5,910 nt of DNA, taken from assembly GCF_006345805.1 (NCBI RefSeq), contig NW_021829575.1:1-5910 (forward strand), written 5' to 3'. The DNA is from Octopus sinensis. Lineage: Eukaryota. The notes beneath the pieces are model-generated. The model was not told the DNA's origin. It made no database searches and saw only the letters and a list, made by a program, of their open reading frames with translations. This document shows positions 1,344 through 5,910 of this stretch, piece by piece (positions within the stretch are counted from its first letter, which is position 1; each line of letters opens with the position of its first letter). A program made the position numbers and the translations under genes.

Positions 1344-1552
1344 TCTTATCAATAAAGATGTAACGACATCACAAAAACTGTTACTCAGAGTTATCGTTCC
1401 CGTTCGTCGGACACTCTTGGTGAACGGGAACGTGGAACTCTGAGTAACAGTTTATGTAATGTATTTGCAGCTTTATATTATAAAACACATTACTCTGTCT
1501 TCGGTATCCGAGTACTGTTTTCCTTCTACCTTGTTTCACATTCGTGTTCTTT

Positions 1553-1557
<5 letters not shown>
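1344..1557 (+). mobile_element. Fold-back repeat with two degenerate head-to-head hammerhead-like motifs plus tail; putative non-autonomous Penelope-like derivative (copy 1)
   Basis: Perfect inverted arms 1375-1392/1436-1453 (18 bp) and 1395-1405/1422-1432 (11 bp), imperfect pairing out to about 1352/1476. Shares an exact 19-mer CGTTCCCGTTCGTCGGACA with 4564-4582. Tail 15-mer ACCTTGTTTCACATT (1528-1542) is the exact reverse complement of 4458-4472. The Penelope assignment is inference from the ribozyme architecture. Confidence 0.75.
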
Positions 1558-1602
<45 letters not shown>

Positions 1603-2544: not shown

Positions 2545-2947
2545 TATGTTTATAATTCTGTCAAGGTGTGAAATTCATGGCACAGACTGGACCTATTTCT
2601 TACGTTTGGCTTTTTGCATTCATCAGGAATTCTAGCCAAATCTACTGATTTTCCTAATTTTAGAATTGTATTCTTGCAGTATTGCCTTGAACTTGTATTA
2701 AGGAAGTGATTCCGTCTAGTTTTTGGTGTTGGTGTTGTGCTTCAGATGAACTCTACCGATGAGACCTAAGGTATCTGATTCCTTTGTTGTTAAACAGGAT
2801 GCTGTCTGAAATTGATTCGGCTCTTATGTCTAGGAGATAGAGCGACCACATAGTGTCCCGGTCGTTCAACTCGTGTCGGGTTTTGGTTCTGGACGGGCGT
2901 AGTGTGTCTGAGGATCTGAAAGCTCTCTGTATGTCTACGAGTAGGCT

Positions 2948-3047
2948 CATTCATTCATTCATACATTCATTCTTTCCGTCATTCATTCATTCATACATTC
3001 ATTCATTCCGTCATTCATTCATCCCTTCATTCATTCATACATTCATT
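2948..3047. repeat. (CATT)n tetranucleotide repeat, 25 units, with a 32-bp higher-order duplication
   Basis: 2948-2979 and 2980-3011 are identical at 31/32 positions, including variant units CATA and CCGT in the same slots. Confidence 0.95.
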
Positions 3048-3107
3048 CTACTGTTATTTCTCTTCATATCCGACTAGATATCACGAATCCTTCTCAGAGT
3101 GCAATTG

Positions 3108-4056: not shown

Positions 4057-4190
4057 CGCACAACAGACACGTACACATGCATGTGCAAGTACATACGCAT
4101 ATACACACGCATGTACAGAAGTACACACAAACACATACACATACGCGCTCACACAGACACGCACACACATACACACTCACACATATATAT
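4057..4190. repeat. Degenerate (CA)n/(CATA)n alternating purine-pyrimidine tract
   Basis: Old interrupted CA-type repeat ending in a short TA run. Confidence 0.88.
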
Positions 4191-4276
4191 CGGAGTAAGC
4201 GCATAAAGGCGAAGCAAGGTGGGAAAAAGAGTACTCAAATACCAGAGGTAGAGTGATATGCTGCTTTTTAATAAAG
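4191..4276 (-). mobile_element. Internally deleted copy of the fold-back element: tail present, ribozyme hairpin absent (copy 2)
   Basis: 4192-4261 aligns to 4445-4512 at about 83% by hand (58/70 columns). 4259-4280 is identical to 4644-4665 (TGCTGCTTTTTAATAAAGTATA). Confidence 0.85.
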
Positions 4277-4440: not shown

Positions 4441-4443
4441 CTC

Positions 4444-4662
4444 TGGAGTAAACACATAATGTGAAACAAGGTGAAAAAAGAGTACTCAAATAACACTGGT
4501 AGAGTAATATGCTTTATTCGAAAGCAGCAGAAAATTCAACAAAACTTGTTACTCTGAGTTTCACGTTCCCGTTCGTCGGACAGTTTTTTCTAGCAAAAAA
4601 CTGTCCGATGACGGGAACGTGAAACAGGTTTCGTTGAATTTTCTGCTGCTTTTTAATAAAGT
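4444..4662 (-). mobile_element. Fold-back element with hammerhead motif, AATAAA and ~70-nt tail; putative non-autonomous Penelope-like pLTR derivative (copy 3)
   Basis: Inverted arms 4521-4550/4623-4652 (28/30) and 4559-4589/4595-4624 (one substitution, one gap) around a 5-nt spacer CTAGC; the two right-arm intervals overlap at the deletion junction. AATAAA on the - strand at 4518-4513. Tail homologous to 1485-1557 and 4192-4261. Flanked by (TA)n on both sides. Confidence 0.8.
4541..4587 (-). ncRNA. Putative minimal type I hammerhead ribozyme (U4C core variant, palindromic helix III)
   Basis: Minus strand reads AAAACUGU-CCGACGA-ACG-GGAA-CGU-GAAA-CUC-A-GAG-UA^ACA(A)GUUUU. Helix I: 3 bp + bulged A + 5 bp. 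Helix II: 3 bp + GNRA loop. G12A13A14A15.1 intact. Helix III ACUC/GAGU closed by 1 nt. Predicted cut between 4550 and 4549 after GUA. The core differs from canonical CUGANGA at position 4; activity untested. Confidence 0.68.
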
Positions 4663-4674
4663 ATATATATACAC

Positions 4675-4729
<55 letters not shown>

Positions 4730-5095: not shown

Positions 5096-5308
5096 AAAAT
5101 AATCCTTTTAATCTAGGCGTGAAATTTTTAGGGGAGGGGGTTAGTCAATTAAATCGAAATCAGTGTTCAACTGGTACTTATTTCACCGATCCCGAAAGAA
5201 TGAAAGGCAAAGTCGACCTCGGAGGAATTCGAACTCAAAACCTGAAGACGGAAGGAATGCCGCTACGCATTTCGTCCGGCGTACTAACGATTCTGCCAGC
5301 ACGCCGCC
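5096..5308 (-). mobile_element. tRNA-derived SINE, near full length
   Basis: Minus strand starts GGCGGCGTGCTGGCAGAATCGTTAG (A box), has B box GTTCGAATTCC, then GAGGTCGACTTTGCCTTTCATTCTTTCGGGATCGGTGAAATAAGTACCAG, a central domain resembling conserved metazoan SINE domains, and an AT-rich 3' end. Resembles a very abundant Octopus SINE from memory, unverified. 3' end approximate; no TSD found. Confidence 0.85.
5224..5298 (-). promoter_or_regulatory. Internal RNA polymerase III type-2 promoter (A and B boxes) of the SINE
   Basis: A box TGGCAGAATCG (5298-5288) about 10 nt from the 5' end; B box GTTCGAATTCC (5234-5224); spacing about 53 nt. Confidence 0.7.
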
Positions 5309-5910
5309 TGCAGGGAATTTTTGTGGGTCGATATATAAGTGAAATCTACAAAATAGTGGAATAAATCGCTAGACAGATATTAAACATGTATGAAAATCAT
5401 TTTGGAGAGTGTCTCCACTCAACGGAGTGTTAGCGTTGAGAATCGTTTGGATAGCTTCTTAAAGAAAATGTTATTTACTACTGTTAAAAGTACATGAACT
5501 AAATTCACGTGAAGATATCGGGAAAGAAAATTTTGATGCTGCAAATGAAATTTTTAGACCAACAAATTCATGTTATGAAAAGACAAAATCAAAACAGAAA
5601 CCTAATAATGACCGAGTTTAATCTGATATCATATGTCTACCTCTCTCAAGTAGCTTATCAGAGAAAATCATATTCAGAGCACATTTTTTAAAATAAAATT
5701 TATCTAACATCGATAAGAAATAAATAAAGGAGATTTACATAGATTTTGTATTAATGACTGATGTCTATTGAGTCTGTTTCAGTCCAAGTAATAAACAAAC
5801 GATATATAATATTAAGTATGTGAATAATTTTTTAAAAAAATGTTTGAACTTAGCATTAAAATACAATCTTAAATGTGTAAATTTATGTCGAAGAAGCAAG
5901 TAGAATGTTG

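Follow-up and report, generated by a model that had tools for sequence, protein, structure and literature searches.

The window analysed here is the whole stretch of 5,910 nucleotides (nt), positions 1 to 5,910 of contig NW_021829575.1 of Octopus sinensis (assembly GCF_006345805.1). On its minus strand, at 4541-4587, it carries a sequence resembling a minimal hammerhead ribozyme with a C in place of the U at position 4 of the catalytic core (C4). An earlier reading of the letters alone, referred to below as the original prediction, had taken this motif for a structurally complete ribozyme and a member of a U4C-variant family lying in a dispersed repeat. We propose, as the rather likely explanation, that it is the least decayed copy of a hammerhead-derived block carried by fossil, inverted and 5'-truncated insertions of a non-autonomous retroelement of the Penelope-like element (PLE) type, and that C4 was a trait of the source lineage. 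The 4541-4587 motif itself probably cuts poorly or not at all. The copies in the window are decayed, and ribozyme activity is, judging from sequence, a prediction.

Read on the minus strand from 4587 to 4541, the motif runs AAAACUGU/CCGACGA/ACG-GGAA-CGU/GAA/ACUC-A-GAGU/A and then ACAAGUUUU. The minus-strand letters were checked, and the parts within these 47 nt are as first described. They belong to a repeat arm that we call arm A and are laid out as follows.

4541-4587, minus strand: hammerhead-like motif in arm A; no other copy is complete
4587-4580, minus strand: 5' strand of helix I
4579-4573, minus strand: core C3-C4-G5-A6-C7-G8-A9 (CCGACGA), with C4 at 4578
4572-4563, minus strand: helix II, ACG-GGAA-CGU, of 3 bp (A10.1-U11.1, C-G, G-C) with a GGAA loop
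4562-4560, minus strand: G12-A13-A14
4559-4551, minus strand: helix III, ACUC-A-GAGU, with ACUC/GAGU around a single A
4550, minus strand: H17, an A, completing the cleavage triplet GUA, which is followed by A (GUA/A)
4549-4541, minus strand: 3' strand of helix I, with A4546 bulged

The helices follow the type I order (I-II-III-I), with a helix I of 8 bp and one bulged A. Among the arms of the repeat, arm A alone has G12-A13-A14, A15.1-U16.1 and an H17 other than G (4562-4550), and the predicted cleavage site does fall between 4550 and 4549. The core box departs from the type I consensus CUGANGA at one position, position 4, where arms A, B and C all have C; at the remaining six positions they match it. 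If the A of helix II is read as an extra nucleotide, 2 bp remain (C-G, G-C) and a U stands unpaired before G12. Stem II of natural hammerheads is often only 2 bp long (Perreault et al. 2011, PMC3088659).

Helix III of arm A can form either as 3 bp closed by a triloop or, in a dimer, as 4+4 bp. ACUC-N-GAGU is indeed self-complementary: the two-copy duplex of arm A has a computed energy of -9.4 kcal/mol with a central A.A mismatch, and the palindromic helix III duplexes of arms A (ACUC-A-GAGU), C and D (both ACUC-U-GAGU) span -9.4 to -9.9 kcal/mol, each with a central mismatch. Since the palindrome supports an intermolecular 4+4-bp duplex, the idea of cleavage as a dimer is physically reasonable. 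A very short palindromic helix III that allows a dimeric helix is also what PLE minimal hammerheads have; both this feature and the order of the motifs are, as had been claimed, those of the Penelope-type minimal ribozymes.

Chance expectation was estimated with our own relaxed type I descriptor. It allowed at most one mismatch to CUGANGA and an optional extra base after A9, and required GAAA, an H17 directly after U16.1, at least 2 bp in each of helices II and III, and at least 5 bp in helix I, where one bulge was permitted. On both strands of the whole window, 4541-4587 was the sole match. Across 1500 dinucleotide-preserving shuffles, the relaxed descriptor with at most one core mismatch gave 0.137 matches per window, and motifs as good as the one observed (helix I of at least 8 bp, helices II and III of at least 3 bp each) averaged 0.0033 per window. 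When random sequence was drawn with the base composition of the arms, about 5e-4 equally good motifs were obtained per 5.9 kb of one strand, and about 4e-5 are expected in the 512 nt of sense-strand repeat arms, the last figure being an order of magnitude only because it derives from a single event in 2000 simulations. A genome-wide scan would still return such motifs by chance, so that the motif taken alone is suggestive, not decisive.

The surroundings of the motif add to this. A blastn search of arm A against the window, followed by MAFFT alignment, resolved six related arms into three insertions of one short non-coding repeat (1345-1558, 4191-4276 and 4441-4661), which bears out the claim that the motif lies in a dispersed repeat. 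Each insertion consists of a long and a short arm placed head to head, its outer ends adjoining a (TA)n-type microsatellite, and the units measure only 86-221 bp and are without a coding part.

1345-1414, minus strand: arm C, short arm of insertion 1, ending ...GAUAAG beside a microsatellite
1410-1404, minus strand: CCGACGA box of arm C, with C4 at 1409; its helix III reads CUC-U-GAG
1415-1422, no strand: junction filler of insertion 1, tcttggtg, 8 nt between arms C and D
1423-1558, plus strand: arm D, long arm of insertion 1, whose full tail ends ...UUUCUCUGA beside (TA)n
4191-4262, minus strand: arm E, long arm of insertion 2, 3' tail only, ending ...UUACUCCG beside (TA)n
4259-4276, plus strand: arm F, UGCUGCUUUUUAAUAAAG, short arm of insertion 2, ending at the same AAUAAAG point as arm B
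4441-4589, minus strand: arm A, long arm of insertion 3, 149 nt; sense 5'-AAAAAACUGU...UUACUCCAGAG-3', the 3' end adjoining (TA)n
4590-4594, no strand: centre of the insertion 3 palindrome, a 5-nt spacer CTAGC at which both arms stop at the same template position
4595-4661, plus strand: arm B, short arm of insertion 3, ending ...AAUAAAG beside (TA)n
4605-4611, plus strand: CCGAUGA box of arm B, with C4 at 4606; helix II and GAAAC are kept
4505-4665, no strand: near-perfect inverted repeat of about 150 nt formed by arms A and B, folded below as RNA

The outer ends of these arms are fixed. All three long arms share the end ...UUACUCC(A)GA, and the three short arms share another, ...AAUAAAG (in arm C, GAUAAG), 71 nt upstream of the long-arm end in the template. 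The inner junctions vary: the arms of insertion 3 reach AAAAAACUGU, those of insertion 1 stop near the core box or A9, and both arms of insertion 2 stop far downstream of the hammerhead block (the truncation point of arm E lies well downstream of it, and arms E and F share a 4-nt overlap, TGCT, at their junction). That the 3' ends are fixed and the 5' ends variable, and that there is no terminal inverted repeat, argues for target-primed reverse transcription and not for a DNA transposon. Measured from the putative cut site, one 3' terminus is 38 nt and the other 109 nt downstream.

This anatomy resembles what has been published for PLEs. PLE copies are found with an adjacent inverted, 5'-truncated copy that forms an inverted repeat, show a bias to microsatellites and carry a tail of 30-40 bp, usually at one end only (Craig et al. 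2021). The purified protein of the Anolis Poseidon element prefers AT-rich DNA, cleaves and extends both strands, and starts reverse transcription at two internal RNA sites, the sequence between them being the optional 'tail' of genomic copies (PMC11167929). In that element, initiation takes place 111-118 nt into the open reading frame (ORF) and the hammerhead cut site is at +26, which places initiation about 85-92 nt downstream of the cut (PMC11167929). The two 3' termini and the other PLE-like features thus suggest that the repeat was probably a PLE-type, and probably non-autonomous, retroelement.

Several further observations concern the architecture of the insertions. About 165 bp separate insertion 2 from insertion 3, which lies downstream of it and is oriented the same way, consistent with PLE insertion beside earlier copies. 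A small stem-loop (CAC...GUG) is found 10-20 nt before the long-arm 3' end at 4453-4463 in arm A, at about 1537-1546 in arm D and at about 4203-4214 in arm E; it recalls the stem-loop at which reverse transcription begins in the Anolis PLE, and a single compensatory change is seen in arm E (A-U to G-C), although with a consensus energy of -0.8 kcal/mol and three sequences this is only a hint. Other element classes were considered and set aside. A MITE (miniature inverted-repeat transposable element) or foldback DNA transposon was rejected since the inverted repeat is not terminal, one arm running 71 nt past the other in every insertion; target-site duplications are unreadable inside (TA)n. Twin priming of the L1 type was rejected because both arms copy the same ~70-nt template stretch and not adjacent segments. 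A tRNA-like head of a short interspersed element (SINE) was looked for in the window and not found, ARAGORN reporting no tRNA, and an RNA polymerase III B-box on the opposite strand (GTTCGTCGG) was dropped as only a partial match by eye.

Between independent insertions, conservation is highest in the hammerhead-like block. Arms A and C agree at 10/10 positions of the core box, 28/33 of the rest of the block and 11/29 of the adjacent segment, and share no tail. For arms A and D, the core box being absent from D, the corresponding values are 29/34 for the rest of the block, 18/28 for the adjacent segment and 50/71 for the tail. The consensus of arms C and D for the 3' strand of helix I (ACAGUUUU) is a perfect 8-bp complement of AAAACUGU, the 5' strand of arms A and B; since it pairs perfectly, the bulged A of arm A is private to that arm.

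C4 has the same family-wide character. It recurs, as the original prediction had noted, at 1409 in arm C and in the right arm (4606, arm B), and its presence in three arms from two independent insertions marks it as a family trait and not a private mutation. C4 stands in a CpG whose usual decay, C to T, would create the canonical core, so that C4 was already in the source element. Two side observations touch on the same box: wherever the box is present (three arms), its C4-G5 CpG is unchanged, and core position 7 is C in arm A (4575) and U in arm B (4609) of the same insertion, a CpG-to-TpG-type change after insertion.

The remaining copies are damaged. Parts are complete in only one of the four block-bearing arms, the other three having lost G12, A13 or helix III. 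Arm B has a deletion of about 10 nt that covers helix III and the GUA site, with U16.1 gone and GAAA kept. Arm C reads CGAUAAC, so that AUAA replaces GAAA, G12 is lost and U11.1 is now A. Arm D is 5'-truncated near A9, hence without a CUGANGA box, and has GGAA for GAAA (A13G), its helix III and GUA being kept; the 5' strand of helix I is absent from both C and D. The earlier statement that the arms of the first copy keep the same helices therefore stands for helix III (in C and D) and for helix II in D, where it is fully kept, but not for helix II in C (U11.1 to A), helix I or the catalytic residues. Likewise, the key core residues said to be retained are retained in arm A, where every catalytic residue except U4 is present, and not in arm C, which is without G12, or in arm D with its A13G. 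Together with the lack of a covariance-model match, the marginal fold described below and the missing tandem partner at the locus, these losses make the description as a structurally complete ribozyme family an overstatement.

A number of results weigh against a hammerhead origin within a PLE. Helix II is ACG/CGU, 3 bp with an A-U closure, and in the minimal hammerheads of PLEs the usual length is 6-8 bp, with a conserved G10.1-C11.1 (PMC4209133). The isolated 58-nt RNA folds at -6.1 kcal/mol, worse than its shuffles (z = +1.16), and its minimum-energy fold is not the hammerhead; the hammerhead secondary structure is marginal, with -1.6 kcal/mol and an ensemble probability of 5e-4, and a CCG/CGG hairpin that joins C3-C4-G5 to the CGG of helix II has a pair probability of 0.36 versus 0.18 for helix II. 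Scoring against the Rfam hammerhead models, proposed earlier as a check, came out negative: with a cutoff as loose as E<=10, cmscan listed no hammerhead family for the whole window, for 4500-4670 (171 nt) or for 1350-1560 (211 nt). Counting covariation over the four block-bearing arms gave no support and spoke neither for nor against the helices, II and III being unvarying and helix I not comparable owing to truncations, and the family picture draws on two independent block-bearing insertions. The window has no reverse-transcriptase or GIY-YIG ORF, nor any credible ORF, and open six-frame peptides across both hammerhead-bearing insertions, compared with a set of 5.8 billion proteins, gave 1206 word candidates, none with E<=1. 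Exact-pattern scans of metagenome and viral contig collections returned either nothing or 14 matches, all in high-GC contigs (0.59-0.72); we take these as chance, 0/14 continuing into AAAC, the rest of the GAAA box. Finally, the one-sided extension is 71 nt here versus the published 30-40 bp, and Naiad-type PLEs, which lack hammerheads, have been reported in Octopus species (Craig et al. 2021).

The sole Rfam matches were sub-threshold miRNA-precursor-like hairpins, reflecting generic hairpin structure, and microsatellite artefacts. As to the latter, mir-297, mir-1277 and mir-3149 matched at 4-68, 1791-1861, 4072-4140 and 4661-4728 with scores far below gathering; these matches sit on (CA)n and (TA)n microsatellites and are low-complexity artefacts. 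If read through, both block-bearing insertions would fold as hairpins. The RNA of 4505-4665 reaches -88.9 kcal/mol (z = -16.6), a structure that would bury the hammerhead-like motif and thereby weakens it, and the RNA of 1360-1465 in insertion 1 forms a long near-perfect hairpin of -55.2 kcal/mol (z = -10.0).

We consider it fairly unlikely that the resemblance is a coincidence in which a palindromic, foldback or MITE-like DNA element, or a hairpin-prone (TA)n satellite, mimics a minimal hammerhead. This explanation can draw on the frequency of relaxed one-mismatch matches in shuffled windows (0.137), which makes look-alikes inevitable in a genome scan, on the missing covariance-model and covariation support, and on the long hairpin being the dominant structure; central deletions of long palindromes could also yield variable inner junctions. 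It does not account well for the quality and the position of the motif. Motifs this good are about 40 times rarer than relaxed matches (0.0033 versus 0.137 per window), and this one is found on the repeat's sense strand, some 100 nt before a fixed 3' end, where PLEs carry their hammerhead, and in the most conserved part of the repeat. Moreover, the arms are unequal by 71 nt in all three insertions, and the inverted repeats do not stand at the termini, where a DNA transposon needs them. A different suggestion is that any present activity resides in long hairpin RNA, with read-through of 4505-4665 and 1360-1465 feeding small-RNA or RNA-editing pathways. It is compatible with the other readings, and the strongly negative folding energies of both hairpins and the miRNA-precursor-like character of the only Rfam matches speak for it; we nonetheless regard it as very improbable, given that those matches are far below gathering scores and generic, that any transcription of the locus is hypothetical and that the inverted arms are a by-product of the insertion mechanism. 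Double-stranded RNA from both hairpins entering small-RNA or adenosine-to-inosine editing pathways is speculation.

The original prediction itself amounts to a living family of U4C-variant hammerheads that self-cleave as dimers through the palindromic helix III and tolerate, or even prefer, C4, which we think unlikely. Arm A does have every catalytic residue except U4, C4 is common to three arms of two insertions and survives in a CpG, and no other part of the repeat is conserved as well as the block. A U4C hammerhead that occurs naturally in a viroid is considerably less active in vitro, yet in vivo it remains active enough to allow infectivity (Perreault et al. 2011, PMC3088659), and weak cores may be assisted by protein, because the PLE hammerhead studied in vitro, that of Anolis, cleaves only with its protein (it is dispensable for insertion in vitro; PMC11167929). 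On the other side, a complete map of single and double mutants of a tertiary-stabilised hammerhead found all CUGA-turn mutants low in activity except for the C3G:G8C swap, so that no single mutant of the turn escaped (PMC9901934), and even canonical PLE minimal hammerheads cleave poorly in vitro (PMC4209133). Here the 3-bp helix II lacks G10.1-C11.1, loop-loop contacts are missing and C4 creates the competing CCG/CGG hairpin; three of the four arms are broken at G12, A13 or helix III, the window holds no direct tandem copies of the block, and Rfam gives no match. With a minimal scaffold, a 3-bp helix II, A10.1-U11.1 and C4, a weak catalyst is the best that would be expected. The more specific case of a Penelope-derived family, apparently of cephalopods, in which C4 is fixed and which still self-cleaves, for instance with protein help or as a dimer, seems to us quite improbable.

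Returning to the fossil PLE-type insertions that we favour, the following course of events would produce them. The GIY-YIG endonuclease of a PLE would cut AT-rich DNA on both strands, and reverse transcription would start from both strands at either of two internal RNA sites and stop at a variable distance, leaving 5'-truncated arms. The block would descend from the hammerheads of PLE pseudo-LTRs (long terminal repeats) and of animal non-LTR retrozymes. Had the source transcript been tandem or multimeric, two copies would pair through the palindromic ACUCNGAGU into a double hammerhead that would cut after GUA, perhaps slowly or with the help of a protein. The 4541-4587 copy, having no direct-repeat partner, would be a fossil of this arrangement, and if transcribed it would be locked in a 70-bp hairpin with its inverted twin.

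If the PLE interpretation is true, the window would offer a compact natural record of Penelope-type insertion of short RNAs, in which both strands were primed, two start sites were used and (TA)n served as the target. It would also contain a hammerhead-bearing non-autonomous element in an octopod, none being described there in the literature that we searched. The C at position 4 matters only if the family is active: the uridine of the U-turn, mutation-intolerant in vitro, would then be replaceable in nature, and a lineage with fixed C4 that still cleaves would be the first among retroelement hammerheads to lack the CUGA-turn uridine.

Other features of the window are unconnected to the repeat. 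An unrelated inverted repeat at 2430-2544, with 24-nt arms that are 92% complementary (CGAGGGGTGTATGAAAAGTCTTGA / TCTAAACTTTTCATACACCCCTCG) and 67 nt between them, looks like a small MITE, and at 2940-3050 there is an imperfect minisatellite, based on (CATT)n and repeating about every 32 nt. SINE-like sequences occur at 1860-2230 and, on the minus strand, at 5110-5320, which we take to belong to an abundant octopus SINE family.

We then compared the block and its insertions with known systems. The U4C change, which the original prediction thought possibly undescribed, is already known: the viroid variant cited above has the same single core change (Ambros and Flores 1998, as summarised in PMC3088659). 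As that summary describes it, the variant is a tertiary-stabilised type III hammerhead in an RNA replicon, unlike a fixed genomic trait of a retroelement with a minimal core. Animal non-LTR retrozymes (Cervera and de la Pena 2020, PMC7229834; Li et al. 2026 preprint, doi 10.64898/2026.07.22.740005) are, like the repeat described here, short, non-coding and low in GC and have a type I hammerhead. An origin as non-autonomous derivatives of PLE pseudo-LTRs has been suggested for them, and among molluscs they have been reported from mussel (PMC7229834; doi 10.64898/2026.07.22.740005). In contrast to our insertions, which are inverted pairs with no direct tandem and no loop 1, retrozymes form direct tandem repeats of about 170-400 bp, have helix I/II loops and usually keep a canonical core. 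Assignment as a non-LTR retrozyme was rejected for want of a direct tandem block in the window; insertions 2 and 3 are co-oriented, but insertion 2 is without the block. A PLE-type, probably non-autonomous retroelement fits the recent proposal that animal retrozymes derive from PLE pseudo-LTRs.

The closest parallels are with PLEs themselves. In comparison with PLE minimal hammerheads (Cervera and de la Pena 2014, PMC4209133), our motif differs in having C4, a 3-bp helix II with A10.1-U11.1 and not one of 6-8 bp with G10.1-C11.1, a helix I of 8-9 bp versus 4-5 bp, and no PLE ORF linked to it in the window. It agrees with them in the type I order, the open helix I and the very short palindromic helix III that implies a dimer, and also in the form of its copies: most minimal hammerheads are single truncated copies, and some form opposite-strand pairs 100-700 bp apart (PMC4209133). 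As for insertion architecture (Craig et al. 2021; Frangieh et al. 2024), apart from the longer extension, the AT-rich or microsatellite targets, the inverted 5'-truncated copy, the one-sided extension and the two alternative 3' termini are all found in three of the three insertions. In concordance with the Anolis Poseidon element, in which the hammerhead lies about 100 nt upstream of the start of reverse transcription (PMC11167929), the corresponding distance here is 109 nt.

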